Positions 8,355 through 39,009 of a stretch of 64,000 bases of DNA are shown here, piece after piece. Each line of letters opens with the position of its first letter. The stretch's first letter is position 1. This stretch comes from Anthoceros angustus (Eukaryota > Plantae > Anthocerotophyta). The translations under genes were made by a program, and so were the position numbers. The notes under the pieces were generated by a model that saw only the letters and a program-made list of their open reading frames with translations, made no database searches and was not told where the DNA came from. The stretch spans positions 186,001-250,000 of the forward strand of contig MU008172.1 in NCBI GenBank assembly GCA_010909165.1. Reading direction: 5' to 3'.

Positions 8355-8625
8355 AACGCTCAGTTGCACAGAAGCCATGTGTTGTGCAACAGCAGTGAGG
8401 GCCCGGAGGGCCCGGACCGCTGCCTTTGCAAACTCTTGTCCAGGTCAGGTCAATCACCCGCTGTATGTGTGTGGTAGGCAAGGCATTGATTTTCGGAAAG
8501 CCTAAGCTTCAGTTGACTGCCGTGAAGTGGTGGTCTAATCCAATGACGGGCAAGGCTGGTACTGGTACATAATCTCCGCCGGTCTTGAGTCAAATTTATC
8601 GTCAGTGTCCAGCGGCCATGGTCTA

Positions 8626-16446: not shown

Positions 16447-19400
16447 AACAGCGTCTGGGTAGAAAGGGGTTTCTCCAGTAACCCCTTCTTGCACATGTCT
16501 AAGGATGGACCCCTTTTTGCGCCATGCAAAATCCGAACACAAATCGGCTATTATGTAGCAAACCCTCGTGTTTTCCTATAACGAAGAAGCATGGACACAT
16601 AATGTGTGTTATTGAAATGTACAGCAATAATGACAAGATGAAACCATAGTCCACCTTGTGGACTTGTGTATATCGTGAAAAAATATTATTCGGCAAACAT
16701 GTGCGCGCCCGCCCTACCGCCAATGCCTAATTTATGTTCACATTCTCAATCAGTTACTCCTCAAACGCTTGTGTTTCGATCTCGGGACAATAATGTCATC
16801 GTTGATAGACTGTAGGCGAGGATCGTGAACCGCAAGATTTTGATCTGATGGGTTTGCCCCTATAAATCCGCCCATGCCAAACGTCTGTAAATGCTGAATA
16901 TCCCAAGTGGGATCCTTCACCGCTGGGGCTGTTTCTTGCTCATCGACACGCTTCTTCGGTGTTTCTGATTCTTTCGTTGTTGCTTTCTCCTTTTTCTTCT
17001 GTGGTCCCTGGGATTGACTCAAATCCTGAAGATCGATGGGAGCGGAAGTGCCATGAGTTAAATGAAGAAACGACGCTCTCGACTTGATAGACCTTCCGCC
17101 TGCTAACTCCTTTGCGAAAAAAACCGGATGCCCTCGCCTATGTGGCTTGGCCAATGCATGCGATTTAACCGGCGGTGTTCTGTGGAATGCCTCCGGGAGA
17201 GGCTGGCGAACGGATTATGCTCTCGGCACTAGAGAAAGTAATTCAGGGAGAGTTAAGCGTGAGCGGCATGAAGACGTGGATCATAAAGGCAAAAGTTAAA
17301 TGTGATACAAAGCTGCTCTGTTTACGGTGTACGTCATTTGCAGAGGTTGAGAGAGTACCCACAACGACGGCGGATGATATCGCAAAGTTTCAACCGGTTT
17401 TCACCACATCGTAAGTTATTCTCTATCGCACTATGGATTAGTGCGCGCACTTGTTTGCGCATCCCCATCATTGTCAAATTTCACAATGCTTTTTGGTACT
17501 GCACTTTGAAGCAAGAGAGTACAAAGAAAAGTCATTCCAGATAGCTTCAAAGAGCATATCAACGCAAAGAAGGAACCGGAAGAGGGTGGAAGACCTTCGA
17601 GAGAATTAGCGTGAGGAGGACAATGATGCTAAACTATCCACGCCCAAGTCCCAAAAGCAAACAGAAGTCGTACCAAGTAATTATCGGTGATATTCAGAAA
17701 TGGCGGCTATCTTGGAAAGCGGAATACAAACCGCTGGTTGTTGATTTGCCAAGAGGGAATGTGTCGTAATCGGATCGAGATGACATCCAAGATTATGAAA
17801 AAATCATGGATGGGTTCATGATCAACGGTCCGCAAAACCTTCGAGTGGTATTCATGCATGGTCCGAGATCGGCGTGACGCTCGAATGCGCCAAATGGTGC
17901 TGGGGGTGTTTATACCATGGTGTGGGAGAAAGATAATTTAATTGCACGGAGGACATGCTAGCTGTGGGGCTGGAGGCGGGCTTCGCAGCGGGGCCACTAA
18001 GTCCGGAAGCCTGGCTCAAGGCTTCAACAACAAAATCGGAGGCCATGGAGAGAAGGGGAGAAGGGTGGGAAGAGGGTGGCTCTATTCCTTCGCCATACTG
18101 ACCGAGGAGACAGTTTACATTCGACGCCTGGAGCTGATGGATCGATGAAGGTCTTGGACAAGGATTGATGGTTGTTCAGATCCGCAACTAAGACGAGCAT
18201 GTTTTGACGCTATACAAGCCGTGGATTATGGGTTACAAGGATGCACCGCCAAATCAACGGGGCAGTGGTGGTGGGCAACATTGACATGTCTAATGGGGAT
18301 CCTGTAGTACGCTTGCTCGCATTACAAGGCCCCAAGAATTTGATGCGGTGCCATGTGGTCCCGAGCTATACAGAGCGCTCGAGATCGTTCAACAATCTTG
18401 TGATCAAGAAGTGCGAACCGCGCTTTTGCTTGTTCGGAATGTAGGCGGAGCAATCGTATTCGCAACTCGATCCAATTTCCGCTTCCAATGTTTATGCTTC
18501 GACCGCTTGTCTCTAACACTGAGCATTGTTCATTGCGCAGGGCTCTGTGATGGGGAATGCGTTCATCAGGACGTTGTGTGCGGAAATCACACAAACAGTC
18601 GTTCAGCAAAGGAGGGTCATGGCGCTGTGGCGCGCAAGAGCCGAGGTGCGTGACGAGGAGGAAGAGAAGGACAGCGACAACGAGGAGGGCACCGAATTTG
18701 GCCCCGAGGATGAAGACTATGGCCCAATGCCTGATATCCTGGGACATTCGGATGAAGAAAATTCGGACGCACAACAGGACGACAGGGATGCGGGGGTTTT
18801 CATGCCTTATGAAACCCCCCGGGGGTTGCAGCATCAGCTGGAGGTGGTAGAGGGGCGCCGCCGGGCCAGAGCCGGTCGAGGTCAGCAGTTCTTGGAAGCC
18901 GGAGGAACCGGCGCTGCCGCCGGCCTCACACCCAGGAGCAGCCTCAGGCACCACCGCATGAGGCGGAGGAGAGGGCGCCGCCGGCCGCGCCCGCTATGAC
19001 TAAACAGAGGGCTGCGAGAGAGGAGGAAGGGCCTAAGGGGAAAGGCGGATCTGCCAAGGAGATCGGAGCAGAGGAAGGACGAGAGGACCATCCTAAAGCA
19101 AAAGCAAAGAGGAAAGGCAACAACCGCAGAGGGTGGAAAATGTGGTGACATTCCCACTATTCATGTGACAGTATCAGAGAGGATTGCGGAAGCTATCCGG
19201 ATGAAGACCCTTGACACGGGTCGAGAAGCAAGATATGCAAAGAAGGTAGTATTGGAAACAAAGTTGGTGAAATTGGAGAACCTTCGCAAGATCGCACCGA
19301 CCGATGCATGATACGGAGGGTGGATGAAGCATGGGCCAATTATTTGGCGTGTTATATCGAAGGGAGGATTGAAGAGGGCGTTTTGCCTTTATTATGTATG

Positions 19401-21561
19401 ATTGATCCTGGAGTGTGATGACATGGAAAAACTAGATCGTAGATTCGGCCAAAAATATGTCATGGGAGTCCTTGGAGGAAACCACACTTATGCGGCAATG
19501 AAGCATCTTGCGACATCTCCGCAAAAGCGGTTTCGATGTGGAGGCTCATGTGTACTGTGGTCTCAATGTAGAGATGCGAGTCCTCGCCCGAGACCATGTA
19601 CGATGTCGACAAGCGCGGAAGATGAATTTTATAGAGCGGTGAGGTATTTGCGTGATGAATTGATTATTGCGAAACGGGATGCTGTGCGAGATGACCATGA
19701 CATGGAAATTCAACTTGTATAAGGTGTTGGGGCTTATTGAGGATGATGAAGCCAAGATGATGTTTATAAACAGAACAAGGTTGACAACAGGACCCACATT
19801 TTATGCATCGCGAAACAAGAGGGTAGGGTATGGGAAAATGTAGACAAGATATTTACGAAGTGGGAAGCAGGGGAGTTGCCAGAGCAAAAGAAGCATGTGA
19901 TAGCAGGGACAAGCAAGAAGAGCAAGGTGAAGCGGAAAGTGACCGACGAGGCTAACAAAATAGACACTGTCTATGTGAAGCCAAAAGATATGCTTGCAAA
20001 GCCTTGGAAATCATTTCAAAAGTTCAGTGAGTGTGGCAGCAGATACTTATCACCGCAAGAGAAAGTGCGGTGTCTCATTGACCGAAAGGAATGGATGACG
20101 ATATATCGCGGAAGAAATTCCATATTATTCAAGTGGCGATGGCCAAACACTTGGGTTGCTCTTCTTTGAAGAGGTTCGGCAGAGTATCCCCAAAGACTCA
20201 ATCGATGAAATGCTCGCGATTCCAAACGGCATTTCGGGGAAAGGTAAGCCATTTTCCTGCACCTTCATTCCATTTTCAATTCCGGGGGTGCCACCGCCCG
20301 CGCCCACATGTCCGAGCGATCGCTGGGGCGCGCCGGCCGCGCCTCCACCTTATTAGTTGTGAGGTGCTTGAGCCTGGCTTCGCATTCTAACAGGTTGTTT
20401 GGTTTTTGGCAGCAACTGAAGGACGTGGAGGTCTTGACAAAGCTGCCCGACGACTTCCGGCATTTCATTTTCGAGATCAATAATTGGAAGGGCTTAGAGA
20501 ATGAGCAGCGGGCTTTGGCGGACAAGGACTTGCAAGAAGGACTCCAGATATTCAATGTTCCGTCAACTGAGAAACAGGTCCAGTACCAGGTGGAAGCCCG
20601 CAACGTTCTGGACATGCGTGGGTTTTTGAGGGGAAGGAAATACACCCTTCTAGTCATGGATGTTCCTCGTGGATTTGACATCGGGCCAATGGACAAACGA
20701 ATGGATTTATCGATGATGGGTCTTGTGTTCCAAAGTTTCGGAGAAACGGAAAATGACGACTTCAATTATCGTCATGCATGGTGTTGAAGAAGCCCATACG
20801 GTAAGGGAGGCTATGCGAAGTGGTGTGCCAAAGGCGGCTTGGTGTCATTCATTTGGGATAAGACTAACATGAACAACGATGAGGAGGATTTGAGGCGTGG
20901 AATACGTTACGCTTGGATGGGGTGTGAAAGATGGATGTTCGAAGGACAGCCATGATGCCAAATGTGATGCACGGACCTTCAACAATGGAAGATCATTGTG
21001 GACACCCTCATGCGTCAAAAAGTTTACTGTCTCATGACAAGTTGGTAGTGTGCCCATACCGAGACCATTGGGTCTTATGATGAAACTCGTGAGGACATTC
21101 TCCAAGGAGGGAGACGGGTTATTGATGCATGCTCGTGGGACTACGACACTAGCTGCGCTGTTGCAGTGGCAATCAGATTGCAATAGAGGCGGACTTGAGA
21201 TGCGCAGTTACATTGCCCAACAGACACGCGTTGATGTCTTGCCCGATGCGACGAGAGCTGACTTTTGAGCCGCACCGAAGGGGACCATCTCAGTTCTGGG
21301 CAAAAGAGGTATGTATTAGCGAGAAAGACTGCTTGAAAGCCCAAGTCGTCGCATTGAGTGCGAAGAGGTTGAAGACGACAACCGGCGAACTTATGGAGGA
21401 TGGACAGCAGACTTTGGATGCTGTATGGCAGGCGACCCCGACAAACGACGACACCCAAAATGACATCAATGAAGACCAGGAGGCTTTGGGTGCGAATGAT
21501 AGCTTTGACGCACAGGAGATGGAGCGCATGCGGAATTTGGCACTTGTAGAAGATTCGGCCC
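16447..21561 (+). mobile_element. Left arm of a large AACAG-TIR DNA transposon carrying methyltransferase-like cargo; right end not found
   Basis: 16447-16478 matches the 32-bp TIR of the 5642-7296 element at 29/32 positions, and the subterminal motifs (aaccccttcttgcac, ggacccctttttgc, aaaatccg) are shared. Confidence 0.75.
17150..18250 (+). pseudogene. Frameshifted beta-class amino-methyltransferase-like gene, copy A (linker plus MTase)
   Basis: Linker LEKVIQGELSVSGMKTWIIKAK; motif-IV-like YKPLVVDLPRG (DLPRG at 17743-17757); YIRRLELM; motif-I-like IDGCS(G)S at about 18164-18185; QAVDY. Confidence 0.55.
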
Positions 21562-21599
21562 GGATGCAATGGTGGACTCTCAAACAATCCTCGCGATAG
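19250..21599 (+). pseudogene. Frameshifted ParB/Srx-like domain plus beta-class N4/N6 DNA methyltransferase-like gene, copy B
   Basis: IRRVDEAWANYL...LPLLCMIDP...YVMGVLGGNHTYAAMKHL (GGNH at 19474-19485). Linker VWENVDKIFTKW. YTLLVMDVPRGFD (20659-20673). RPLGLMMKLVRTFSKEGD(R)VIDACS..TTLAAL..GNQIAIEAD (about 21060-21200, read across two shifts). Confidence 0.75.
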
Positions 21600-23395
21600 A
21601 ACATCAGACGATTAGCAAAATGCCATGCACTTAGCGGGTGTAGGTGTTTAGTTTTGCAGCTACTACGAGAAAACCCGCATGTTCGGATGTTTTCAATTCT
21701 TAAAATTAACAATGGGTCTTTTCTCAAATTTTGTTGTTACACGCGGCTCTTAGTAGCAGCCACCAGCGCCATGTGGGTTCGTATGGGGATGCCATTTTCC
21801 TTAGGTTTTCCGCTAGGATATGCATACACGAACGGTCTCAGATCAAACCAGCCGCTTTTCCGCAATTTGTGGATGGTGTCTTTTCCACAAAGGGTTATTT
21901 TTCCTTGAAGGGGTTTGTATATTCCCCTTTATAATTTATGGTGTTATGGGCAATGAGTGTTTGTGGGCAGCGTGCTCACGTGCCTCATGAGGATGTCGCA
22001 GTCGCACCCATCGCATCGTCTCAAGCGGGCGGTTGGAGCTATATGATTCTGCAGCCTAGTGTGATTCCAAGTTCTTAAATGCAAGGACACTTCAACATGC
22101 GAGACCGCTGTGGCGTGGCCATAGGGTGGCATCTGTGGATCGCCCGCCCATGTTTGAAGTGCGGTGTGGATGCAATGGTGGACTCTCAAACAATCCCTCG
22201 CGATAGAACATCAGACGCTGATTAGCAAAATCTGCCTTAAGCGGGTGTAGGTGTTTAGTTTTGCAGTTGCTACTACGAGAAAACCATGTTCGGATGTTTC
22301 GACCCCTCTTAAAATTAACAATGGGTCTTTTCTCAAATTTTGTTGTTACACGTGCTCGCTTAGTAGGGTGGCGCCACGCCATGTGGGTTCGTCTGGGATG
22401 CCATTTTCGGTTAGGTTTTCCGCTAGGATATGCATACACGACAGGTTCCAGATTCAAAACCAGCCGCTTTTCCGCAATTTGTGGATGGTGTCTTTTCCAC
22501 AAAGGGTTATTTTTCCTTGAAGGGGTTTGTATATTCCCCTTTATAATTTATGGTGTTATGGGCAATGAGTGTTTGTGGGCAGCGTGCTCACGTGCCTCAT
22601 GAGGATGTCGCAGTCGCACCCATCGCATCGTCTCAAGCGGGCGGTTGGAGCTATATGATTCTGCAGCCTAGTGTGATTCCAAGTTCTTAAATGCAAGGAC
22701 ACTTCAACATGCGAGACCGCTGTGGCGTGGCCATAGGGTGGCATCTGTGGATCGCCCGCCCATGTTTGAAGTGCGGTGTGGATGCAATGGTGGACTCTCA
22801 AACAATCCCTCGCGATAGAACATCAGACGCTGATTAGCAAAATCTGCCTTAAGCGGGTGTAGGTGTTTAGTTTTGCAGTTGCTACTACGAGAAAACCATG
22901 TTCGGATGTTTCGACCCCTCTTAAAATTAACAATGGGTCTTTTCTCAAATTTTGTTGTTACACGTGCTCGCTTAGTAGGGTGGCGCCACGCCATGTGGGT
23001 TCGTCTGGGATGCCATTTTCGGTTAGGTTTTCCGCTAGGATATGCATACACGACAGGTTCCAGATTCAAAACCAGCCGCTTTTCCGCAATTTGTGGATGG
23101 TGTCTTTTCCACAAAGGGTTATTTTTCCTTGAAGAGTTTGTATATTCCCCCTTTATAATTTATGGTGTTATGGGTAAGGGAGTGTTTGTGGGCGTGCTCA
23201 CGTGCCTCATGAGGATGTCGCAGCTGCAATCTCGGGCGTCATTCAAGCGGGCGGTTGGAGCTATATGATTAAAGCGCAGTCAGTGCAGATTCCAAGTTCT
23301 TAAATGCAAGGGACACTTCAACATGCGAGACCGCTGCGTGGCCATAGGGTGGTGATTCTGTGGATCGCCCGCCCATGTTTGAAGTGCGGTGTGGA
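21562..23395. repeat. Tandem triplication, unit 606-612 bp
   Basis: ggatgcaatggtggactctc starts at 21562, 22168 and 22780. Copies 2 and 3 give identical translations over more than 130 codons. Junction microhomology GGA. Confidence 0.95.
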
Positions 23396-24690
23396 GCTAG
23401 ATTTTGCGAGCATGTCCCGACGGTGATGGCCACCATGCCCGCTTCCATCTTCACCGACGCCCCGCTAGGCCGCTCGGACGACCATATGTCTTTTCATATG
23501 AGAGGGCGGCGGAAAGTATATCTCATGCACGATAACGAGGGCAAGGTGGTGGGTGTCGATATGCACAAACGCGCGGTTTGGAGGTGGCTTCCTCCTACAA
23601 CAAGGTCTCCTTAGGACCGTGGACGGCCTCGGGTCACTAGTTGGAAGGGTGGACACCGGGTCTAAAGGTTCACAAAAGCCACCCAAAACCATGTTTTCCG
23701 ATTTCATTAAAAATCCTATCTAGGAGCAAATCATAGAGGATCTGCTTTTCCGTGTTTGTATGTCCGCATCTCATATTAGTTTGGCTAACCAGGTACATTG
23801 CCTATAAATGATTTGAAAATCGGGCAATTTGTATGGACAACCAAAAGGCAACGCGCAATGGAAAGTCCACGCGTGTTGCATCGGTGTCCACCGTCATGGT
23901 CGCCGCCTGCATTAGTGGGAGGGTCGTGGTGGCACCGACGCCTGCATAAACCTTGCATCTCCGCCCAATGTCGCGCGAGGGGAGGAAGATTTTGACGCCT
24001 ACCGCTCATTGCGTGGCCATAGGGTGGCGTGATTCAGGATTGCCCGCCCATGTTTGAAGTGCGGTGTGGAGCTAGATTTTGCGAGCATGTCACCGGTGAT
24101 GGCCACCATGCCCGCTTCCATCTTCACTGATTACGCCCGCTAGGCCGCTCGGACGACCATATGTCTTTTCATATGAGAGTCGTGGCGGGCACAGTATATC
24201 TCATGCCTGATAACGAGGGCAAGGTGGTGGGTGTCGATATGCGACAAACGCCTGCGGTTTGGAGGTGGCTTCCCTCCTACAACAAGGTCTCCTTAGGACT
24301 GGTGACGGCTCCTGGTCACTAGTTGGAAGGGTGGACACCGGGTCTAAAGGTTCACAAAAGCCACCCAAAACCATGTTTTCCGATTTCATTAAAAAACATC
24401 CAAATCTAGGAGCAAATCATAGAGGATCTGCTTTTCCGTGTTTGTATGTCCGCATCTCATATTAGTTTGGCTAACCAGTACATTGCCTATAAACGCAGAT
24501 TTGAAATCGTGGCAATTTTGTATGGACAACCAAAAGGCAACGCGCAATGGAAAGTCCACATGTGTTGCGGTGTCCACCGTCATGGTCGCCGCCTGCATTA
24601 GTGGGAGGGTCGTGGTGGCACCGGACGCCTGTGCATAAACCTTGCATCTCCCATGTCGTAGGAGGAGGAAGATTTTGACCGCCTCATGCT
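23330..24690 (-). pseudogene. Probable 2OG-Fe(II)-dependent dioxygenase C-terminal domain, in two tandem copies (period about 680 bp)
   Basis: Stitched minus-strand reading: ILYDLLLDRIFNEIG...VLRR....AF(VA)HIDTHHLALVI....W...VKMEAGMVAITVGTCSQNLAPHRTSNMGG..RI..TLWP. This gives HxD, a distal H and an R with the spacing of the 2OG-FeII_Oxy fold. Several frameshifts must be crossed. Confidence 0.45.
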
Positions 24691-24699
24691 CAACCATGA

Positions 24700-26170
24700 G
24701 ACCCTGCCCGCGAATCGTTTGGAAGTGGCTTGCCACGCCTCGAATTTTTTGCGATGGAGACCCCACCTCTCGACTGACCATCAAACGAGAATTCCACATG
24801 GGCGATGGAAATTGGAAGTTGCCCGCAGTGGTGGCAATCACAACATGGGGATTCCTTTCAAGCACGCTGGAGTGATCCCGCCCGCTTCATTGCTTGGTCC
24901 TTAAGGAATTTCGGTTGAGGCGGAGGCGGTGCAAACTCGCGACATCGCTGTAACGTGTTGATCAACACCGGATTCCACTCGGGGTTGGAGCAGAATGGTG
25001 TGGAGGGCAAAGGAGCACGACATGTCCAGTGTACTTACCGGTGGTCAAGGATAAAATTGGAGAAAGTCATATTGCTACATGTGTGTACCGAGGTGTGTTA
25101 GTGCGCTATATGTGAAAGTTGAACATCTGTTTCGTTGGATTGTCACATGACATCCATTGTCATCTTCGACATAGCTTTTATCTCGTGGGTTTACATACAT
25201 AGTCTTCCCTAGTGGAGATTAGGAGCTTGTATTGATCCGCCTGCTCAGATAATGGACGCCGCGCTTCTTTGAAATCGGTCCGTTGTTTCGTGAAATCCAT
25301 ACCTTGCAGTGCAAGCACGCCCATGAGCTCGCTCATCAAACACCGGCCAATCATCCGAACACATTCTCCGAATCGCCACCACTCCCATGCTTCCTAGCTT
25401 GCGTGCTCCACCAGACCGTGTTCGTTGTCTAGGTCGCCTCCAGGACCTTGCCACCGCCTGAATTTTGCAAGCGATGGAGACCCCACCTCGACAACCGACT
25501 CAAACGAGAATTCCACATGGGCGATGGAAATTGGAAGTTGCCCGCACCGGTGGCAATCACAACATGGGCGGGATCCTTTCAAGCACGCCTGGAGTGATCC
25601 CGCCCGCTTCATTGCTTGGTCCTTAAGGAATTTCGGTTGAGGCGGAGCGGTGCAAACTCGCGACATCGCGTAACGTGTTGATCAACACCGGATTCCACTC
25701 GGGGTTGGAGCGTGAATGGTGTGGAGGGCAAAGGAGCACCGACATGTCCAGTGTACTTACTTGGTGGTCAAGGATAAAATTGGAGAAAGTCATATTGCTA
25801 CATGTATGAGGTGTTAGGCGTGCTATATGAAAGCTTGAACATCATGTGTTTCGTTGGATTGTCACATGACATCCATTGTCATCTTCGACACATGCTTTTA
25901 TCTCGTGGGTTTACAACATACATAGTCTTCCTAGGTGGAGATTAGGAACATTTGGCGATTGTATTGATCCGCTGTCAGATGAATGGACGCCGACGCTTCT
26001 TTGAAATCGGTCCGTTGTTTGTGAAATCCATACCTTGCCCGATTGTGCAGACGCCCATGAGCTCGCTCATCAAACACCCGGCAAATCAATCTAACACATT
26101 CTCGAATCGCCACCACTCCCATGCTTCCTAGCTTGCGTGCTCCACCAGACTGCGTTCGTTGTCTAGGTCT
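24700..26170. repeat. Tandem duplication, period about 725 bp
   Basis: gcgatggagaccccacctc...aattccacatgggcgatggaaattggaagttgccc at about 24750 and 25470. Junction microhomology cttgccac at about 25448. Confidence 0.9.
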
Positions 26171-29100
26171 CGCCTGGGACCTTGCCACCGATGTGTTTGT
26201 TGTGTTCATAGCCGCATGCACGTTCTACCAGTGCGATACCACCGGCCGTCCGTGCTTAAGACCACACCGGGTCCTCCTACCGTAATCCTCGAAACAAACA
26301 CGTAGCCTATCCACGTCCGCACGACACACCTCGATCCGTGAAGCAAAGTTTTCCAATCCTACATCCCCACCATCCGGCGCACACACCCGAGGAGGGTGCT
26401 CTTCCGCCTCCTTCACTTGCTGCTCCGCATCCCCAAGGACCATTGAGTTGTCGCTGCATGCTTCACCACTTGCCATATGACCCTTGGTCTCGTTCCTCGT
26501 TGGTCTCGCTTCAACGACACATATGAACCCCGAGCACGCCCATGTTGTTCACCATGGGCTCCTTATTGAACGTCTTCCGCCTCCATAGCTCCTCGCCCAC
26601 CTCCTCCTCTTCCGGCCGCCACCGTCCATGGAATTGATTCAAGGTCCATGAATTGAGCGCACTGGATCCACATCAACAAATGACATTACGGCATAAATGC
26701 TATCATACCCGACCCCGATCCGCGACCCGTCCAAAGACCCAATCTCCTCATCAGACATACAATTGAATCAACCTCTTCAAGAGTCTTAGGGGCTTCGATA
26801 GGGGAAACAACCCGATCATCCGCAGTTGTAACACAATTTTAGTTCCACCGCTCGCAAACAGTTGTCACTCCACCGCCAAGTTGCGCTTCTCTCGAGCACA
26901 AACGGTTGAGGCACACAATCCTTATCCAAGCTCGCGCAAGTGAAAAGTCCTCGCATCGCATACCTCCGACAATGCTGTCACATTGGTTTTATGCCGAATA
27001 TCGTCACACCCCCGCACGCTTCCATCAAGACTTCTCTAACCATAGATGTGTCATCCGGAGAATGGAAGACCACAATACGAAATGTGGATGTGATGCCTTT
27101 GAACCGCATGATGACCCCTTCAAACTCGCCTTGGTAAATCTTGTGTCATACTCGTGATTGGGGATCTAGATCCAAGCCTGGGAGGTCTAACAACAACAAA
27201 GCATACGGCTCTACAACCGGGCCATGTTCACTATGTTCCCACACGATCCCGACCTTGCCGGGTTTTTCGGCTTGGAGTCGCTCACGATCATCCGCTTATC
27301 CTCGTGTGGTCGATTTCAAGGCACGCGACTCCTCCATCCGCTGTGCCCGCCTTGAATATGTGCTCCTTGAAGTTCTCGTAGGGCACCCCACTCAAGGCAA
27401 GTGTTGGCACGCACATGAAAGACACATCCCCACCAACAAATGCAAGCGACTGCTCGAATGTACGGTGTGAATGCCTCCACTTTCCATGACTTATAAGGAC
27501 AAGAAAGACAAGAGAGAAACTCGATTTGGGTATAGCTAAGTGTTCATCGAGGACCCACTGATTTTTGAATGGAAGTTACTAATGATTCACCATGCAATCG
27601 GGATATCGTTCTGAACCTCTTCAAATGTCTCACGCTGCAAATGCTTGGCGTCACATGGATGAGGTTGAGTTTTTGGCCTTGTCCACCCACACGAACATTT
27701 GTTTCAATGTCAATTCTCCAGCCAGGACTTTCATGCATGTCTTCAAGTTGTTGTTCCCAGCTGCAGACTGTTCGATGCCCTGGAAACACTTCCATACCCT
27801 CACCGGTATACTAAGCTCCTTTGTGTCAATGACCAAGTTTGCTCTAACTGCTAGTTGTCTTCCTTGAAGCCTGATGTGAGAGCCCGAGCCGCTTCCACCG
27901 CCAGCAACTGCTTGCCTCCACTTCTCAAAGATTTCATCCACGCATTTCCACACCTCATCATCAACACATTCTCGAATCGCCACCACTCCCATGCTTCCTA
28001 GCTTGCGTGCTCCACCAGACCGTGTTCGTCTAGGTCTCGCCTGTGGACCTTGCCACCGATGTGTTTGTTGTGTTCATAGCCCGCTTGCATGCACGTTCTA
28101 CCAGTGCGATACCACCGGTGTCCGTGCTTAAGACCACACCGGTCCTCCTACCGAATCCTCGAAACAAACACGTAGCCTATCCACGTCCGCACGACACACC
28201 TCGATCCGTGAAGCAAAGTTTTCCAATCCTACATCCCCACCATCCGGCCATCAAGCACACCCGAGGAGGGTGCTCCGCCTCCTTCACTTGCTCCGCATCC
28301 CCAAGGACCATTGAGTTGTCGCTGCATGCTTCACCACTGCCATATGACCCTTGGTCTCGGCTTCCTCGTTGGTCTCGCTCAACGACACATATGAACCGCA
28401 CCAGCCATGTTGTTCACCATGGGCTCCTTATTGAACGCCTTTCCGCCTCCATAGCCTCGCCTCGCCCACCTCCTCCTCTTCCGCCGGCCACCGTCCATGG
28501 AATTGATTCAAGGTCCATGAATTGAGCGCACTGGATCCACATCGTAAATGACATTACGATAAGAATAGCACCCGACCCCGATCCTGCGCTGCCCAGACCC
28601 AATCTCCTCATCAGATACAATGAATCAACCTCTTCAAGAGTCTTAGGGGCTTCGATAGGGGAAACAACCCGATCATCCGCAGTGTTGTAACACAATTTTA
28701 GTTCCACCGCTCGCAAACAGTTGTCACCCACCGCCAAGTTGCGTTTCTCGAGCACAAACGTTGAGGCACACAATCCTTATCCAAGCTCCTGCGCAAGTGA
28801 AAAGTCCTCGCATCGCATACCTCCGACAATGCTGTCACATTGGTTTTATGCCGCAATAGTCGTCACAAGACCGCACGCTTCCATCAAGACTTCTCTAACC
28901 ATAGATGTGTCATCCGGAGAATGGAAGACCACAATACGAAATACCGGATGTGGTGATGCCTTTGAACCGCATGATGACCCCTTCAAACTCGCCTTGGTAA
29001 ATCTTGTGTCATACTCGTGATTGGGGATCTAGATCCAAGCCTGGGAGGTCTAACAACAACAAAGCATACGGTGGCTCTACAACCGGGCCATGTTCACTAT

Positions 29101-29830
29101 GTTCCCACACGATCCCGACCTTGCCGGGTTTTTCTCGGCTTGGAGTCGCTCACGATTGTCATGCCTTATCCTCGTGTGGTCGATTTCAAGGCACGCTTCC
29201 TCCATCTCGCCTGTGCTCGGCCTTGAATATGTGCTCCTTGAAGTTCTCGTAGGGCACCCCACTCAAGGCAAGTGTTGGCACGCACACATGAAAGACACAT
29301 CCCACCAACAATGCAAGGCGACTGCTCGAATGTACGGTGAATGCCTCCACTTTCCATGACTTATAAGGACAAGAAGCGACAAGAGAGAAACTCGATTTGG
29401 GTATAGCTAAGTGTTCATCGAGGACCCAGATTTTTGAAGGCAGGAAGTTACTAATGATTCACCATGCAATCGGGATATCGTTCTGAACCTCTTCAAATGT
29501 CTCACGGCAAATGCTTGGCGTCACATGGATGAGGTTGAGTTTTTGGCCTTGTCCACCCACACGAACATTTGTTTCAATGTCAATTCTCCACCAGGACTTT
29601 CATGCATCTTGTCTTCAAGTTGTTGTTCCCACCGCATCTCGATGCCCGAAACACTTCCATACCCTCACCGGTATACTAAGCTCCTTTGTGTCAATGACCA
29701 AGTTTGCTCTAACTGTGTTGTCTTCCTTGAATTCTGCGGGCCTTGTTTGTGTGAGAGCCCGAGCCGCTTCCACCGCCGTGCAACTGCTTGCCTCCACTTC
29801 TCAAAGATTTCATCCACGCATTTCCACACC
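26095..29830. repeat. Tandem duplication, period about 1870 bp, doubling the methyltransferase domain
   Basis: acattctcgaatcgccaccactccc at about 26096 and 27967. Both units end ccacacctcatcatcaac. Copies differ mainly by small indels. Confidence 0.9.
26620..27210 (-). pseudogene. Beta-class amino-methyltransferase-like domain, copy C
   Basis: YALLLLDLP-GLDLDP (about 27175-27205), then (Q)KPLRLLKRLIQLY(S)DE(G)DWV(L)DG.AGSGSGMIA...RNVI..DVDP (about 26800-26665). This matches the textbook KP.Ll.rli..s.eGD.VLDpF.GSG tail. Confidence 0.75.
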
Positions 29831-30400
29831 TCATCATCAACCTTCGCAACACAATAATCCAAAGGTCCGGTTATCCACGAGGCGGTGATAGCGACCTTAG
29901 GTCCATGCTTGGTCGCATCCCACTTAGGAACCCCGCCACCGGCATATATCTCCAACTTCAGTCTAAGTCACACTTGCCCATCATAGCTCGGCCTTCATCT
30001 CGCCTGCGTACCTCACACGGTCGATGAAAGTAAAAGTCTTCCGGCATCCGCAATGGTGTTGTGATCTGGCAACTAACCTCATCTCCTCATTTGTGAGGCC
30101 AGCAAGAACATATGCATCCATCCACCGTACTTTTGAACCAATGGATACAAGTCGGCTAGTCTAGATCGCTGGAAGGAATGATTCCCCAATACATAAAATT
30201 TGTACACCCCGATCCACCTTATCCATGTCAAAGAAGTTCTTGTTGGGACCGGGCGGGTCTACAATGACAATCATGGGCGACACCGACCACCCACGTGGAA
30301 TGCTTCATCTTTTGCATCAAAGCCTCCACCCAAGCCAGTCTAGCTTACGTACCTTGCCAAACCGACATAGTTCTTCCGGAGGTCTACAACCTGATGGATG
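28500..30400 (-). pseudogene. ParB/Srx-like domain plus linker plus methyltransferase-like domain, copy D (paralogue of copy B, opposite strand)
   Basis: QVRKLDW.WVEALMQKMK..PMIVIVDP...FYVLG(G)NHSF (about 30175-30198). Linker EVWKCVDEIFEKW and GELTLKQMFVWVDKAK-type segments. EPPYALLLLDLP-GL (about 29035-29070); motif-I tail at about 28560-28660. Confidence 0.7.
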
Positions 30401-32134
30401 CTTTAACGTGGACTCCCATACTCTTTCCCGCAATTGCCTCCTCGCAACATCTCTCCGGCCTCACTCGTCTAGCCTGTCATCCGTGGCTACAAGACTGCCC
30501 TTGGCCTTCTATGAACTTTGGGAGCTCTTCGCCCCTCTCGGACATCATGTGCCATTCGCTTGCCGCGCACTTGTTGACCCTCCCACCCGCCGTCCTCCAC
30601 GCGATTGCCAAGACTCTCAATCCCTTCCTCTTTTCCTCGATTGTCTACCAACGATCGACGGCTTGAACCCTTCGCGTGCCATGGGCAGACCCAAATCCCG
30701 GTCCGTTGCATCCACCTCCATCGTCATCTTCCACGTCTGCCGGGGCTGGATATGATCCACCGGCCTCGGGCCATCGCCAATGCCATCGCCAAACCCCTCA
30801 TTGTCTGGTCCCCACCCGCATCCTCATCTTCGTCGGCTAGAGAGGTTAGGGTGACATCATCGCAGGCCATGGGCTAGGAAAACCAGCTGAGTGTGGGCGG
30901 ACTGCTTGGACTCAAGCACCGGACGTCCGTGGCTCGCAACCCTCTTACCAGAAGCTTTCATTTCGCAAACTAGTTGTCAAACGTGTCCCATGAATTATAT
31001 TTTGTGCCACCACCTTTTGTTGCAGTTTCACTGCGCAGATCATGCATACTGCTGGCGGTTGCCAACGACCGCTGCAGTGATGGATTTGCTCGATCCCATT
31101 CCGCACTAGGAGTTGCCATTTGATTTCCACTCGCAGATGCCATGCTAGGGGCCTTCTAGATGCCCTTTCGATGTAAGCAATGCATCATCCGCACACCTTC
31201 TAAACATTGCTGGTGCAAAGCCTTGTGGAAGACACGATGTCCATCACCGTGTCGCAATGCCTCCAAAAGTCTTGCCTTTTCCTCGGTTGGCACGCCACAA
31301 TGTCAAAGTTCTTCACCGCAAAGATGTATACTCTAATCCATTGCGGGTCCGACGAAGAGGCTCCTTGTGCTTGAGCCGATCGCAATATGACGACACCGCT
31401 CATCCTTCGTGATCGATCGTGAAAACAATGCCCCGCACATTTCTTTTGGCTGGTGGTTCGCATCATCCTCCATCGACACATACAAGAAGAGCAAGTCTTG
31501 ATTGGGTCGTTGCACCGTCCAACTTCTCTTTGTAATGTCAAATGGCGAGATCATCTTGTACATCCGTGGATCAAGTCAATATCGGACCGCTTGTAAGGAC
31601 TCGGAAAGATGCCTTGGTCGGGGATGCTCTTGTGGAAAGACCCGCATCGTGGCGCAGCTTTGAGTTGTCCTTGGAGTCCGGGCCGGTCCCGCCGCCTGCT
31701 CAAGGCCCGTGAGTCTGCCCTCCGCCGCGCCTTTTTTTCTCCACCGGAGGCCCCGCGATTTGTTGGAGTCATTCTTCCGCTCGAGCCCTTGAGGAGCCAT
31801 TCGTATGCAACTATGAAAGAAGTGAGATCACGAAGTGTTTAGATTGTTAAAAGTCGATACACGCATGAGCCGCAACTTCTCGAACACGGACACCTGTGTG
31901 CGGAGTTGATGGGTTGATGCTCACGACTAGCCCACCGCACCCTCGAGAGCAATGAATTGCACGCTGCGATGAGGAGGTCGAGACATTCTGCACGCCGCCC
32001 CGCCTCCGATGGACAAAGTGCGGGTGAGTGTGAGAACGACCTGCTTTCTCGGCGCGGCAATCTCTTGCTTTTCCGCCACACATAAGCTAGATGGAAATAC
32101 ACATCTTCCCGCCAAAGCGAGAATGAATCTATAC

Positions 32135-33765
32135 CATCCGAAAGGGGAAGGTGGGGTCACGTGCCATGAAGGAAGACACAGGCAAGGCAGCTCAGAATCA
32201 AGCAACTCCTTAAATGCTTTGTCGCATGACCGCGTGTTTTGCCATTGTCGGCTAATGTGGCAAATGCAAATTTGAGCATATTCTAAGGTATATGCTAGTT
32301 ATGCCACGGCTAAAATAGTGTTCCGATGGCATAACGATGGGCACCTAGAGTGATTCAAAGATCCACCGACTAGCTGACCGCCGCTTCCTACCAAAAGTGG
32401 GCATCGACTTCATTGCCGAGTGCGAAGGCTTATTTCGCACAAGCCCGCGAATTGTATCGAGTCGCATCCACTTCTCATCCACCTTGCGCATCCTCCTCCT
32501 CCTCCCGGACGCCACGCGCCCCTCCGTGTGAGAGCAATGGCCAACGACAGCAGCGGCGTGTTCGATTTTGCAAATTTCGCCGGGTCGATGCATGTCATTC
32601 CCGAACGGTGGCCATGAGTCCGACGACTCAATTGTTGATCTCACGATGATGCCCGCACAACCCCGCCGTAGTTTTAGAGGATGATTCACGAGCTATGGCG
32701 GCGGCCGGGCATAGTCCTTGAAGAGACACGGTGAAAGACTTCACAACGGTGGAGAGCGATGACGATGTGCGTGTTCCGATATGGAGGGGGGAACGGAGGA
32801 TATGGTTGCGGTGATGGCGACCTTTTTCGACGATCCCGAATGCGCGGAGAGGATCAAGAGGAGCTCGTGACGTTAACCGGATGTCCGGTGCTCGACGCAG
32901 ACGCCGACGCAGGCCCGACTGCCACCACGAGGCGACTGCACCATCCATCCGGAAAGGGGAAGGTGGGGTCACGTGCCATGAAGGAAGACACAGGCAAGGC
33001 GTGCTCAGTAATCAAGCAACTCCTTAAATGCTTTGTCGCGGCGACGTGTTTTGCCATTGTCGGCTAATGTGGCAATGCAAATTTGAGCATATTCTAAGGT
33101 ATATGCTAGTTATGCCACGGCTAAAATAGTGTTCATGGCATAACGATGGGCACCTAGAGTGATTCAAGATCCACCGACTAGCAAGTACCGCTTCCTACCG
33201 CCGCAAAGTGGGCACATCGACTTCATTGCCGCATTTAGTGCGAAGGCTTATTTCGCACAAGCCCGCGAATTGTATCGAGTCTTGCGCATCCACTTCTCAT
33301 CCACCTTGCGCATCCCTCCTCCTCCCCTGACGCCACGCCTCCGTGTGAGAGCAATGGCCAACGACGCCAGCGGCGCGTGTTCGAAAATTTCGCCGCGGGT
33401 CGATGCATGTCATTCGAACGGTGGCCATGAGTCCGACGACTCAATTGTTGATCTCGGCCGATGATGCCCGCACAACCCCGCGTAGTTTTAGAGGATGATT
33501 CATGCGCTATGGCCGCGTCGAGTGCATAGTCCTTGAAGAGACACGGTGGCAGACTTCACAACGGTGGAGAGCGATGACGATGTGCGTGTTCCGATATGGA
33601 GGGGGGAACGGAGGATATGGTTGCCGATGGCGACCTTTTTCTGCACGATCCTGCACGATGCGAGGCGGAGAGGATCGCAAAGGAGCTCGCACGCGTTAAC
33701 CGGATGTCCGGTGCTCGACGCAGAGGCACCGCCACCACGAGGCGACTGCACCATCCATCCGGACT
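32135..33765. repeat. Tandem duplication, period about 810 bp, upstream of the transposase
   Basis: ggggaaggtggggtcacgtgccatgaaggaagacacaggcaaggc at about 32143 and 32957. Junction microhomology accatcc(atcc)g. Confidence 0.9.
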
Positions 33766-33899
33766 TCTTCGATCACCGCGGCGCATCGCGAAGATGTACC
33801 GGCATTTGGCGTAAACCGGATAACACCGACGCGCCGACAAGGTCCCTCGGCGGCGTGGGGGTCCGAATACTATCGAGAATGTGCTACACCGTGCAGAAC

Positions 33900-36650
33900 A
33901 CCGGGCAAGACTCGATGTGGAGAGTGCGAGTCTCCGGACTTTGGTGAGAAGATCCATGCATTGTTGATTTTGGGCTTGGCTTGGAAACAATATCGCACGC
34001 GGGTGATGGCGGAGTTGCAAGCACGGGAGTCGCCCAAGAGCTAATGTGGTCCGTGGTCCCGGATCTTTGTTTGGTGATTGTGATGCCATCCAGCTTGAGT
34101 TGCTCGAGATGATGCCTCGCGCACATCCGCCAAAGGTGAGGATCTGCAACGAGCTGCACCGACGCTAAGCGTAAAGTACCTCGCCGAGCTAGAATGGATT
34201 TGGTCTTAGAGAAGCATTGTTCGTGGCTTGTGCGCGATTTAAAGCGGCATTGTTGTGACAAAAATGTTTAGAGCGTGTTGGCCATTCAAATTGAAGGTGA
34301 TTCGTGTAGCATTCTTCCGCATGACAAAAGGAGAGGGGAACAGCATTTGCAAGACCATCGGATCCGATCAAGACGAAGAGGAGTTGTTGCCCATAGTATG
34401 GATAAACCGGATTCCACATGGGAAGAAACAGTGTGTGTGAGGGCTCGGGGGTTTTACGCATTGGGTCACTAAGATACAAGAATGCGCAAACCGGGTAGTG
34501 AAAAATGTTAGATGGACCGTAGGCTACGGTCTCAAAAGCAGCCAACGCCATATGGATTACACGTCATGTGGATGGACGTTTTCTTCAAAGGTCAGGAAAG
34601 ATGCCGAATCGGAAGTCTTCAACTTGCCGACTCGACACTAAAGAGGAGATCTTCATTGAGTATGCGAGCGGAAACGGTCGATGTGCTCCACGTTTATTGA
34701 CTACTTTTGCAAGCTTTGGATGAAGTATTTCCTGTTAAAATACCACACAGCAACCGGCCATCTGCGGCATCGATGACCTAAAGAGGAAAATAAAAAGGCG
34801 GTCGGATCACGACAAGGTGAGATGGCGGTCCTTATTCCGGTCACCGGATGTCCCGCCGAACTTTGGCGCAACCCCATGGCCTCACACCCTTTTCTTGCGA
34901 ATGAAGGGGGCTTGAAACAAACCGTGTGCACATTGGCGCCCTTATTGTTGCGTGCAGACAAGAATGTGGAGCCGAGTCCACAGAGAACAACAAGAAGGAG
35001 CGCGAAATGGCGCGCACCGCACAAGTGCGGCGGGCTAAGTTCATTGGTATTGCCATAGATGGTATGGACCAAAAACAGAGTTGCCCCATTACCGCAGATT
35101 GCCAAAGACGGTTGATTCCGGAGCCCTTGTCGGGCTTCACGTTCTAGGTGTGCTGGTGTTCAACTACTTGGTGCGCACTAGTGTATTTGAGTTTCGAATG
35201 TGAGAAATGATCCGAATGGAATCAGAGCCGTGATTCAGATGTTATCAATACTGGAGGGGCCGCTATTCTATACTTGCGGATGGACAATTGCTCAAAACAA
35301 GAATCGGAGGTATTGGCATATCATCCATGCTTGTGGCGAAAGGTATCTTCAAAAAATCAAGGTGGGGTTTCTTCTTGTTGGCCATACCCACGATCGATTG
35401 ACCAAATGTTTTCGAGGTTCTCGGTTGTGCTAGGGTTGAAGGATGCTTACAGCCCGAAATGATAGGGTTGCCGGAGCGGGCGACACCCCATCACCGCAGA
35501 TTCACATAAGAAGGAGGTGCGACTTCAAGACCTATCTATGGCCGAAGGGGATCGTCGCAACGTATGACTTGCATAATCACGCTTTCAACACCAGTTCAAA
35601 ATAACAAGGGAGAAGCTGCTATCGAGAGGACGGATGCTAAGATGCAAGGAGTTTTCAAGTTCGATCAGGTCACCGGAGGGTGGTGTGCGCTATTACGTGG
35701 GTGCCACCACGGGTGAGCGACTCCATTGTTGCCGTTGGTCCCATCACATGCCCAAGGTAAAGGAAAGGGACAAGCAAAGCGGAAGGATGCCCCGATGCCT
35801 GGCGGTAGTAGTAGTGTAGTGGCGGAGTCCATGAAGTAAAAGCGGGCCTAGAACGCACCAGCGACATATGAATGTGGAGCAACTAGCATGGTGGGATACG
35901 CCTGGGATGAACAGTAGCAATAGCCGAGAGACTAGCAGCATTCCATTCCGTTGGAGAGAATGGTCTTGGTACACTCGCGATGAAGAAAACGAGGTACCAC
36001 CAGAGACCCTCCAGACTCAACTTTGGTTGATCCCGCAATGGCCGACGGATTTTTGGACATGGTGGAGGTGTACACAGGGCACATCAAGTGCGGAGGGAGG
36101 GCAAGGCGAGGCTCAGTCGAGGTTGTGTGAAGGAGATTGAGGAGGGAATGATGGTTGCTGTCAAGCCGGGATGATCCAGAGGCGACCATTCGCTCGCAAA
36201 AGTGGTGGAGGTGGACCATGATGCGGGGTCCCTTTCATGATAGTTCATTGCGGAGAGAACAATGATGCATTCGAGGGAAGGTACATGGAGGAGTTTGTGA
36301 TACGGAAGCGCCCACCGTCGAGGGAAAAAGTGCGATCAAAGAATGGAGGCAAAGGGCGTCAGGAGAAGCATTTGCAAAGCCTCAACTTCCCAGAGACAAA
36401 TGTGCTGGCCTATGATTTCGCGCTGACAAGGAACAAGACGTTGCAGAGGACGACAATGAAGCTGATAAAGACCAAAGTCTTTGAGTTGCGGTCAGAGCCG
36501 GCTGATGAACCGGCGAGGCTTCCGCCAGCTGACACGAATGTCATGCCCGAAGACATGATTGACTCGGAAGACCTCGACAATGTGGAATCAACGGATGAGT
36601 CCACAGACGTGGTGGTGGACCACCGGATGGTCGGACTGGAGAGGAGCCGA
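33900..36650 (+). mobile_element. Frameshifted DDD transposase, Sola-like / DUF7869-type
   Basis: FIGIAIDGMDQK..CP (D at 35058); LYLRMDNCSKQ/NKNR (D at 35283); IKVGFLLVGHTHD(R)IDQMFSRFS (about 35371-35420); C-terminal VLAYDFALTRNKTLQRTTMKLIK. Confidence 0.8.
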
Positions 36651-36689
36651 TGAGGCAACCTAATATTGTCAACTTTCCGCCTTGTACCA

Positions 36690-38080
36690 GACGTTATGTC
36701 CCCTCGGGCTTGAATGCGTGGATTGTTTTCGTCTTTTCGGAAAGGTTTAACACCGGCATCATCTGCTTGTAGGAAGTTGACGGTGATAATGTCCGGAGCA
36801 TGTAACGGCGACTATGTCGAAACCGATCCGCAATGTGGTGCTCTAATTTTCTAACAATGTTCGGTGGTTTGTCGTTGAGAGCAGGCGAGGTTTCAATGGT
36901 GATCATGCAGTCATCTATGTTCGACCAGCAGTGGCGAAGTGTTCCCGAGGATGGTCACGCCAGGATGTCCGTGGCAAGGCGTATGCCGCAGCGCAATGTT
37001 TGTTTTCGGTTCTAGTTCGGGACCGCCCCTAATGACTATGGGGTGGAACGGACGGGGTCCGATCTCGCGGCTCGCGAACGGACGCACGGGCGAAACTGAG
37101 TACCAAGACGGGCTCAAAAAGGCGTCTTCCTCCACTGCTTCCACCGCCACAGAGGTTGTCTTCCACCTCCTTTGTGGTTTGTGCACCATCCCTCCTCCTC
37201 GGCGGAGAGCCGTCCTCACGCCATGCTCCTCCACCTCCTTCCAGCCCTTCCGGATGAGGACTGTCCGGTTTTGCCTGCGCGCCCCTTCTCCTTACGTCCC
37301 CCATCCATCCAACCTTCCTTGAACTAACCTCGCTTGCAGCCCTTCCGGATGAGGACTCGCAGAGGTGGCTACGAGTCACCACCTCGTATCACAAGGGAGG
37401 ATGTGGAGGCAAAGCGAGCCAAGGCGGAGAAGGATGGAAGTTGCCCATCCGGGACTTGTGTGGAGGCCATTTGGGTCTCCAGGCGGCGGGAAAGAGATGG
37501 TATGTGGCCATCTCCTTCCATGCAGAGGCGGTGGCATCGTAGATTTTATGCTTTAGGAGGTAGGAAAAGCCAAGGGGTGGAAGAGGACTATAGGATAGCG
37601 AAGGAGGGGTTCCCGGAGGCGAAACGGGGTGCAGCAACTCCAGCATGCGAGAGGAAGGAGGGGTGAAGGAAGAGCTGAGGACTGTCCGGTCCCAAAGAAT
37701 TGTTTAGAGCTTCCGTGACCTTGCATGCCGTGAGTCCATGCAATACCAGAATGAAGGTTGCCGCAGGAGGAGTCGCCGGGAGCGGGAGCGGGTGGAAGTG
37801 AAGGAGGAGGCAAGCACTTACCGTACCTTTTCGCTTGAGAGTTGAGCATGGTTGTCGCATGCACTAACGGGCTGTTCATTGTGGCGTAGACAGTGATGGG
37901 GACACCCTTGGCAAACCGGAGGAGCACAATTGGAGATAGGAGCGTGAAGTGGGTTACCTAGGTTTTTGCAAGCGATCCAGACTAGAAGCGGGGCGGAGGG
38001 GGAAGAGAAAGGGAGGGGAGAGGGGGGGTTGGATGCTTCGTAGCTTTCTCGTGGCTTCACTGGGGTCAGAGTTGGGGACG
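36690..38080 (-). other. Degenerate accessory ORF(s) convergent with the transposase, function unknown
   Basis: Protein-like fragments (LNDKPPNIVRKLEHHIADRF...MLRTL...SYKQMMPVLNL; LLKHKIYDATASAWKEMATYHLFPAAW) separated by low-complexity purine-rich DNA. Confidence 0.3.
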
Positions 38081-39009
38081 GCAATCACATGATTTTGTGT
38101 ATGTCAAGTTTTAGCGTCTGATGTGCAAGCCATGGTCTGCCGCGAAGTGTGAAGCGGAAACGGGGGTTTGAGTTTGGGGAATGCCTGATTCGGGAATGTT
38201 TTGTCTGTCACCGGACAGCCGGTGGCTATGAGCCAACGGTCAATGTCACATGGCATGGACTAGAGGGGCGGTTACATGTGAACTACACCATATCGGTTTT
38301 CCAATACTTTATTAGCGAGAAATGTATTCATCAAGATATACTTTGTACCTTGGGGATGTATATTTGAATAATATTATTCCATGTATTTTACATGAATAAC
38401 CCTAAGGCCCACAAACAGTGAGCCCGCTAGTGATGCATTCATCAATTGTGTAACATGACGTACACTTTTCCATATGCCGCTTTGTAAAGGTAGCTTTGGT
38501 CGTAATGTATCCCAAAAGTGACAGATTGAAATAAAGCCTAAATAAATGTTCTAGTCACGCCATAAATTTATAAGGATCTCTACTTTTTCTCCCGAATGCC
38601 TCTTTTGTTTAACCATGAGACATCGAGGTGTGGAAATATTGCCAATAAATTTCAAGTTTTGATGAAGTGGAATGGGTTTGGGTGTCTGTGAGTTGTATTT
38701 TTAGCGCTTTCCCACAAACCCTCAAAATCAACGTTCGAGTTTTCTTAAGTGCAAATTTTGATGACATATTTGGCCGTCCGGAAAGTGGAGTGTGTCACTA
38801 GCCCTAAGGAGACCTGTTCTACCGTCTGCAGCTTTGAGCACCAGTGTTTCTGCTGGATCCTTGATTTTGGCCACCGGAAGCAACAAAGAAGGATAAATAA
38901 TTAGAACAACGAACATGCCTAGTAGCTTGTTTTCGCTTGAGAGACTCCTCTCAAGCTTTGCATCCTTCCGTGCCGCAACATTGGTCTATGCTTCAAACTC
39001 GCAGACCCT

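Follow-up and report, generated by a model that had tools for sequence, protein, structure and literature searches.

Organization of the locus

The window analysed here is a 64,000-nucleotide stretch of Anthoceros angustus contig MU008172.1 (positions 186,001 to 250,000); it is eukaryotic and plant-like, and transposable elements abound in it. The part from 16 to 39 kb holds the remains of cut-and-paste transposons that carry a ParB-like, DNA-methylase-like gene beside the transposase. One frameshifted DUF7869 transposase is accompanied by three decayed copies of the ParB-like/methyltransferase (MTase)-like gene, termed A, B and the weakly recognized A0 (Table 1). The block is a land-plant-like example of a design already published for algae, and it is dead as assembled. 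It is likely a graveyard of Sola1-type elements, with a minimum of two and probably three copies that diverged long ago, in which the strand opposite the transposase bears an accessory gene. This accessory gene would join a GGNH-containing, ParB/Srx-like N-terminal domain to a beta-class N6/N4 amino-methyltransferase fold.

Long open reading frames (ORFs) are lacking throughout 16-39 kb, where both strands are cut into stop-to-stop pieces of 70-230 amino acids (aa). GC skew is positive across 18-25 kb and negative across 26-32 kb, a change of sign that fits genes lying on opposite strands. The intact ORFs and transcription of a live element are not found: A0, A, B and the transposase carry multiple frameshifts and stops, and an RNA run gives essentially no coverage over 26300-31600. 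On these two counts, present activity of the family, which an earlier note on this DNA suggested may mark or modify DNA, is unsupported.

Table 1. Features of the block and of the surrounding window (positions are those of the window).
Feature	Position	Strand	Remarks
Terminal inverted repeat (TIR) and subterminal region of a TIR transposon family	16447-16540	+	Begins AACAGCGTCTG..TAGAAAGGGGTTTCTCC; four copies in window, 0 expected
A0, decayed N-terminal half of a third MTase-like copy	17545-17992	+	Two in-frame stops; DLPRG at 17743-17757
Gene A, ParB-like/MTase-like pseudogene	18523-21265	+	Several frameshifts and stops
Gene A, acidic N-terminal region	18523-18996	+	
Gene A, GGNH	19474	+	
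Gene A, DVPRG	20659	+	
Gene A, motifs X/I	21059-21148	+	PRPLGL...RGTTT
Run of local tandem duplications	21626-26230		612 bp x3, ~680 bp x2, ~725 bp x2; without coding support
Gene B, ParB-like/MTase-like pseudogene	26550-31566	-	Divergent from transposase
Gene B, upstream conserved ORF-like part	31566-31399	-	
Gene B, ParB-like domain	30460-29984	-	LGNHS at 30175
Gene B, 1.87-kb tandem duplication	26284-30025	-	Units 26284-28153 and 28154-30025; doubles the MTase-like domain
Gene B, MTase-like copy 1	~27295-26550	-	
Gene B, MTase-like copy 2	~29150-28320	-	
815-bp tandem duplication	32134-33763		Spacer of gene B and transposase
DUF7869 (Sola-like) transposase	35058-36611	+	Frameshifted; head-to-head with gene B
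Transposase motifs	35058, 35280, 35293, 35380	+	DGMDQK, MDNC, QNKN, GHTHD, respectively
311-bp direct repeat, left copy	16137-16446	+	88% identity to right copy
311-bp direct repeat, right copy	39006-39290		The two copies bracket the whole block
Non-autonomous TIR element, 1655 bp	5642-7296		Termini as at 16447; CCCC on both flanks (4-bp duplication)
Copia reverse transcriptase ORF, 793 aa	18-2399		Intact
Cupin (germin-type) gene	9592-10269		
ORF with Peptidase_M23 domain	13505-14179		
Copia gag-pre-integrase/integrase pieces	52222-53013		

The transposase and its divergent partner gene

The transposase aligns with the DUF7869 protein of L001, a 9-kb public contig, over 35072-36611 on the plus strand (tblastn expectation value (E) 1.5e-40). 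Pfam DUF7869 recognizes two of its pieces (E 5e-5 and 1e-3), with weak matches at 35191-35459, and the D...DN..QNKN...GHTHD pattern is present. The earlier note had drawn a transposase from 33.9 to 36.6 kb; the tblastn and Pfam matches sustain 35058-36611, whereas the part at 33.9-35.0 kb is without homology support.

L001 encodes a 619-aa DUF7869 protein (168 bits) and, divergent on the other strand, an MTase-like part, the GGNH domain within an ORF of 488 aa and, upstream of these, a conserved ORF. The L001 proteins map collinearly onto the window in the same relative orientation (tblastn). On the minus strand, the upstream ORF falls at 31566-31399, the GGNH domain at 30430-29648, and the middle region with the MTase at 29639-28320 and again at 27965-26629. 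Gene B and the transposase therefore stand head-to-head exactly as in L001, and this independent copy confirms the proposed link between the cargo and a Sola-like/DUF7869 transposase. The protein relatives described below (P0001 and P0004 to P0007) all come from one public run; over short stretches their DNA identity with the window is at most 68-71%, so they are not window sequence sampled a second time. Downstream of the methylase gene, L001 also has an ORF at 8021-8425 (minus) that resembles a non-LTR (lacking long terminal repeats) reverse-transcriptase fragment.

Whether the ParB-MTase genes could instead be host or domesticated genes that lie beside an unrelated transposase by chance nesting has to be asked of any region that is, like this one, a dense transposable-element mosaic in which no TIR pair ties the genes together. 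The head-to-head pairing recurs both in L001, which is from another organism, and in the brown alga Ectocarpus, all copies in the window are pseudogenes, and a short-read word depth of tens to hundreds, a soft measure, suggests many copies. Chance nesting is accordingly very improbable.

The upstream ORF (L001 2528-3175, L003 779-1501, window 31566-31399) is conserved, 215-240 aa long and on the same strand as the ParB-like gene. It could represent either a first exon or a further, third gene. Its ratio of non-synonymous to synonymous substitution rates (dN/dS) is 0.21, and its neighbours in a language-model atlas are weak (0.65-0.80).

Three decayed copies of the accessory gene

Gene B comprises, beyond its ParB-like domain, a middle region and a duplicated MTase-like domain. 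Both MTase copies carry LLDLPGL, FHSPDD, SKPLRLL and GSGSG, and both have the same in-frame double stop in the motif X-I region together with the variant DLP-GL. Since the double stop is common to both tandem copies, gene B was already a pseudogene before the duplication.

The MTase-like regions were compared with a test profile (A5) built from outside relatives only, with the window copies left out. Both gene B copies match it at E 5e-13 to 4e-9. Gene A, which is also the second, more diverged target of the L001 proteins (19453-20574, plus strand, tblastn), matches at 20248-20784 (E 2e-7) and at 21038-21265 (E 0.015). A0 read as separate pieces has no match to this profile; once X is put in for its two stops, positions 7-117 of the profile align with it at E 0.0045 and the outside relative P0005 does so at E 1e-4, through DLPRG, VVFxHxP and VWEKxN. 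A0 may thus be a third MTase-like remnant, as these alignments weakly suggest.

The earlier note had counted four MTase domains. Those at 26.6-27.2 and 28.5-29.1 kb are borne out by the profile but amount to one gene, because they are copies of one 1.87-kb tandem duplication. The domain at 20.6-21.2 kb stands as gene A, and of the one at 17.7-18.2 kb only the N-terminal half (17545-17992) has support, which is weak. The four domains are gene A, the weak upstream A0 and gene B counted twice.

In their middle region, A and B share 20-24% identity, while each is 34-43% identical to L001/L002. As the identity between A and B lies below their identity to these outside copies, A and B are old lineages and not a recent pair within one element.

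Relatives and the methyltransferase fold

Pfam finds no match for the claimed MTase or ParB parts in the window's own pieces. When the longest piece (20248-20784) was run exhaustively with phmmer against 1.84 billion representative proteins, P0001 and P0004 were the sole true relatives recovered. Beyond two fragments of a single sample, the N-terminal half of the family is without detectable relatives in the 1.8 billion representative proteins. P0005, P0006 and P0007 came from a word-indexed search, and a pattern scan of metagenomes gave 43 pattern matches, none of them a relative.

P0004 is an intact 446-aa ORF that reads LLLLDLPRGL, then VFHSPDD, then VVSPYQKPLRLLKK...DGCSGSGSG...RNVVAVDVD. 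Pfam PF01555 (N6_N4_Mtase, cut-off 26.7 bits) recognizes both L001:5868-6752 (43.3 bits) and P0004 (30 bits). The broken window pieces alone stay under this threshold, yet they match the family profile; the PF01555 match that the earlier note expected is thus obtained for the relatives and not for the window's own pieces. The family profile also matches solved beta-class MTases, namely 2zie (TTHA0409-type, 1.4e-7) and the bdelloid rotifer N4CMT (2e-5), and further DpnA, M.RsrI, M.MboIIA and CcrM, in alignments that span motifs X, I and II. Motifs I/II (DGCSGSGS...RNVxAVDxD) are kept in P0004, P0005 and P0006 and align with VLDPFAGTGTT of 2zie. In the window copies A and A0 this stretch, of which motif I binds S-adenosylmethionine (SAM), is degenerate. 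Matches to phage methylases, over 1000 in number, are confined to the C-terminal motifs (X-I-II).

The order of motifs is that of the beta class, with motif IV before X and I. DLPRG precedes SPYQKP...DGCSGSGS in P0004, P0005 and L001, and in gene A DVPRG lies ahead of PRPLGL/RGTTT, so the beta-class reading of the earlier note is supported. In an alignment with 8urk, LLLLDLPRGLELD is matched to LIVADPPYGLGKD and DLPRG stands opposite DPPYG.

The canonical motif IV, (D/N/S)-P-P-(Y/F/W), is absent from the family. Every copy seen has D-L/V-P-R-G, with DLP-GL in gene B. Canonical amino-methyltransferases stack the flipped base on the aromatic residue of motif IV, and an arginine occupies this place in the family. 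With the canonical catalytic motif absent, the working DNA-modification kit of the earlier note stays a conjecture. Because motif IV is D-L-P-R-G rather than D-P-P-Y, two roles have to be weighed for the accessory MTase. Activity as an enzyme whose catalytic loop is altered is tentatively favoured, a non-catalytic SAM/DNA-binding module is possible though somewhat less probable, and something else again is unlikely. An AlphaFold model of the MTase part (P0004, 10-row alignment) was unusable, with a predicted local distance difference test (pLDDT) score of 40.5, and the language-model atlas gave nothing usable for the MTase N-terminal piece or for the upstream ORF.

Among the paralogues L001-L004, dN/dS is 0.08 for the ParB-like domain and 0.13-0.17 for the MTase part, rough values because dS is saturated. 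The dN/dS estimate that the earlier note had proposed thus comes to 0.08-0.21 over these outside copies when the upstream ORF is included. Such low values appear to indicate purifying selection, or constraint, among the intact relatives.

The GGNH domain

The GGNH domains at 19.47 and 30.18 kb are homologous to a domain of L001 and P0007 (tblastn 2.6e-10 and 1.2e-14; profile 7.5e-13). The shared pattern is VW.G.V.I.V.WC.EP.EL...KLD...VE.LM.KM.....LPMVVML......YTCYVLGGNHSWQA...L......ATVLAGL.E.EM..VATDHN. Set against the arginine-rich nucleotide-binding box of ParB/Srx domains (GxRR or GGxHR), its Gly-Gly-x-His resembles the Srx motif FGGCHR; the domain motif is L-G-G-N-H-S/T-W/Y-x-A, and the Arg that follows Gly-Gly-x-His in that motif is absent. 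In the language-model atlas, where L001:3924-4560 is recognized above threshold, the neighbours are DUF3723 (0.96, 186 shared features), ParB_N (0.93) and DUF6551 (0.90). From the resemblance by eye and these neighbours, the domain can be called ParB-like with moderate confidence. Of the GGNH ParB-like domains that the earlier note placed at 19.3-19.5 and 30.0-30.4 kb, the homologous domain is present, while the ParB label is without backing from Pfam, NCBIfam or PDB.

Searches of phage DNA with the ParB-like domain gave chance matches only, and no parS-like inverted-repeat arrays, as described in Bostrychia, were found beside the gene. Translation of the 725-bp tandem units also yields GGNH, at 24830-24841 and 25549-25560, probably by chance, which shows how little a motif of four residues proves.

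Element boundaries

The TIR reported at 16447 is real. A 30-mer from 16449 has three further occurrences in the window, one direct and two inverted (5644(+), 7294(-) and 5002(-)), with 0 chance matches expected. Two of these sites belong to the non-autonomous element at 5642-7296, whose 4-bp duplication would suit Sola elements (PMC3627910, for Sola2) as well as other superfamilies. An orphan right end of the same TIR family lies at 4972-5004. Of the paired TIRs and 4-bp target-site duplication (TSD) expected round a Sola1 element, the block has the single terminus at 16447, and the TSD is seen only on the relative at 5642-7296.

The start of the TIR adjoins the end of the left 311-bp repeat at 16446, and the right copy runs on uninterrupted past the point that matches the TIR start in the left copy. 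The pair looks like a filled and an empty site in series, a state that arose either by true rearrangement or as an artefact of assembly. Next to the right copy lies an ORF on the minus strand, at 39298-40158, that by eye is like a Ty3/gypsy integrase C-terminus and for which Pfam gives no family.

The earlier note had read the whole block as a single Sola-like giant of about 22 kb, from 16447 to ~38800, with paired TIRs, two ParB-MTase genes and a dioxygenase. The real TIR speaks for such an element, as do the 21.5-kb Sola1 elements of Ectocarpus and an inverted match of 24282-24300 to 38818-38800, which is 19 nucleotides long, weak and without a sharp boundary and is kept as a weak candidate only. 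Instead of paired termini, there is one terminus and no inverted copy of the 16447 TIR to its right in the window, and the cargo is present in three or more diverged copies. The divergence between A and B exceeds that of either from the copies of another organism, and they do not behave as a duplicated pair in a young element. The block is bracketed by the 311-bp direct repeat and not by a TSD, and the dioxygenase is unsupported. A single giant element is therefore improbable.

The claimed 2-oxoglutarate-Fe(II) dioxygenase was recognized by an HxD...H...R motif at 23.3-24.7 kb, which falls in the two 680-bp tandem units. Eleven pieces of this stretch match no Pfam family at E<=1 and show no similarity to L001-L004, and most indels that separate the two units have lengths not divisible by three. 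The dioxygenase is not supported, and the stretch is best described as non-coding tandem duplicates.

State of the assembly and points against the preferred reading

The graveyard of diverged Sola1-type copies remains the preferred reading, and several observations count against it. No inverted partner of the 16447 TIR was found to its right in the window, either by pattern search with 3 mismatches or by a Smith-Waterman scan, and no TIR pair bounds any gene copy in the window. A0 is directed inward from the 16447 terminus, unlike the canonical layout of the family. Given this direction and the missing right-hand partner, ownership of the cargo/transposase block by the 16447 TIR is unproven. 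The ParB identity has no match in Pfam or NCBIfam (E<=1) or in PDB, by single sequence or by profile, and an AlphaFold model of the ParB-like part (L001, 8 rows) is unusable at a pLDDT of 46.6. The name Sola1, drawn from the Pfam DUF7869 match and the naming in PMC12477816, should be taken as provisional, and a literature search found no paper on DUF7869. The pairs of local duplicates differ by 8-12%, with a transition:transversion ratio of ~1 and 10-43 small (1-6-bp) indels. Finally, short contigs from a DNA run show 122 indel differences from the window, and in 12 of the 12 best supported the window is missing letters.

These last two points bear on the possibility that poorly polished long reads or a linearized haplotype bubble have produced much of the apparent structure, including five adjacent tandem duplications, the 311-bp repeat on the flanks and many of the frameshifts, in which case the real locus would be shorter and its genes less broken. 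The pattern of differences between duplicates, in which few indels are multiples of three, would be more typical of read noise than of transposable-element decay in plants. The likeness of the right 311-bp copy to an empty site of the left copy and the 100% identity of one 612-bp duplicate also suit an artefact. The contig comparison covered 26300-31600 (5301 letters) with 455 short contigs, of which 212 match at 99% or better, and at most of the 12 indel places most of the depth agrees with the window. The double stop and DLP-GL are common to both tandem copies of gene B, and long ORFs elsewhere in the window are intact (the 793-aa Copia ORF and the cupin gene). An artefact on this scale is unlikely, though it keeps more weight than the single giant element. 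From the stops common to the tandem copies we conclude that the breakage of the genes is real, and that a technical origin is possible for part of the frameshifts and duplications.

Two of the 612-bp units (21845-23068) are 100% identical, whereas all the duplicates around them show differences of 8-12%, a sign either that the event is very recent or that the assembler introduced it.

Elsewhere in the window, the Copia ORF at 18-2399 was considered as an intact paralogue and rejected, as it is a Copia reverse transcriptase.

Comparison with known systems

The closest published design is Sola1-1_Ec32 of the brown alga Ectocarpus (Genome Biol 2025, PMC12477816), a 21.5-kb family that encodes a 1104-aa ParB-like and N4C/N6A MTase protein on the strand opposite the transposase. 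Its authors propose that this protein binds and marks its own element. This giant Sola-1 DNA transposon and the block are alike in their described layout, with an accessory gene on the other strand from the transposase. The two differ in that the host here is plant-like, the copies are dead and motif IV is DLPRG. In the red alga Bostrychia, giant Plavaka DNA transposons carry the accessory genes PAG2/PAG3, with an N6-adenine methylase and a ParB-domain gene (10.1101/2025.02.11.637652), and so hold the trio pictured in the earlier note. PAG3 joins ParB to a 2-oxoglutarate-dependent oxygenase and the MTase is joined to a SET domain, whereas here ParB is joined to the MTase. The Plavaka transposase belongs to another superfamily, and the block has no detectable oxygenase and no short inverted-repeat tandem arrays beside the gene. 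As a Plavaka gene with ParB and a 2-oxoglutarate oxygenase exists, the earlier dioxygenase idea was reasonable, yet it does not apply here. These two algal systems also answer the earlier remark that no description of the combination was known.

In phage and prophage ParB-terminase loci, a ParB N-terminal domain is joined or linked with a beta-type N6/N4 MTase (Iyer et al., PMC4738411). Motifs X-I-II are shared with the phage methylases, which keep DPPY. Phage and prophage ParB-methylase genes are the likely ultimate source of the fold.

DUF3723, the nearest language-model neighbour of the GGNH domain, is a conserved accessory gene of the fungal Starship giant transposons, and its describers regard it as homologous to bacterial chromosome-segregation genes (PMC9156397). 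It is similarly DNA-segregation-like and travels with a cargo-carrying transposon. It differs in having no similarity to the GGNH domain at the level of hidden Markov models, in belonging to Starships, which move by a tyrosine recombinase, and in not being fused to an MTase. The likeness is a hint that ParB-like accessory proteins turn up repeatedly in cargo transposons unrelated to one another.

The rotifer N4CMT (8s9m) and Marchantia DN4MT1 share the PF01555 fold class, the former by its profile match and the latter by description only. Unlike the window family, both are host genes with one domain, their catalytic motifs are canonical, and N4-methylcytosine (4mC) activity has been demonstrated for them.

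Proposed history and implications

In the history proposed here, gene B and the transposase alone would keep the canonical head-to-head layout, gene A and A0 would be transposase-less remnants of other lineages, and local tandem duplications of 0.6-1.9 kb would have enlarged the region. In live copies, a DDD transposase would excise and reinsert the element with 4-bp target duplications. The accessory protein would bind the element's own DNA through its ParB-like part, and the SAM-binding MTase fold would mark that DNA or merely hold it. In the block itself none of these parts can work, because every reading frame is broken. Dead, rearranged and without the claimed dioxygenase, the locus itself adds little further.

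Possible novelties are the conservation of DLPRG, the signs of purifying selection and the tie that the language model draws to Starship DUF3723. A bolder and improbable proposal is that in land-plant Sola1 transposons the DLPRG ParB-MTase works as an enzyme, is maintained by selection and has an activity not seen before. It could act on another atom or substrate than the DPPY enzymes, or serve as a SAM-dependent DNA clamp. If this proposal were true, the family would be a reservoir for domesticated plant methyltransferases outside 5-methylcytosine (5mC), such as the liverwort 4mC enzymes.

That transposons carry a DNA-binding and DNA-modifying protein of their own has lately been recognized as a theme among algae, and fungi show it in another form. 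A land-plant-like genome with several ancient lineages, a conserved non-canonical motif and purifying selection points to a wider host range of this theme, and the family offers a concrete protein for testing non-5mC DNA marking.

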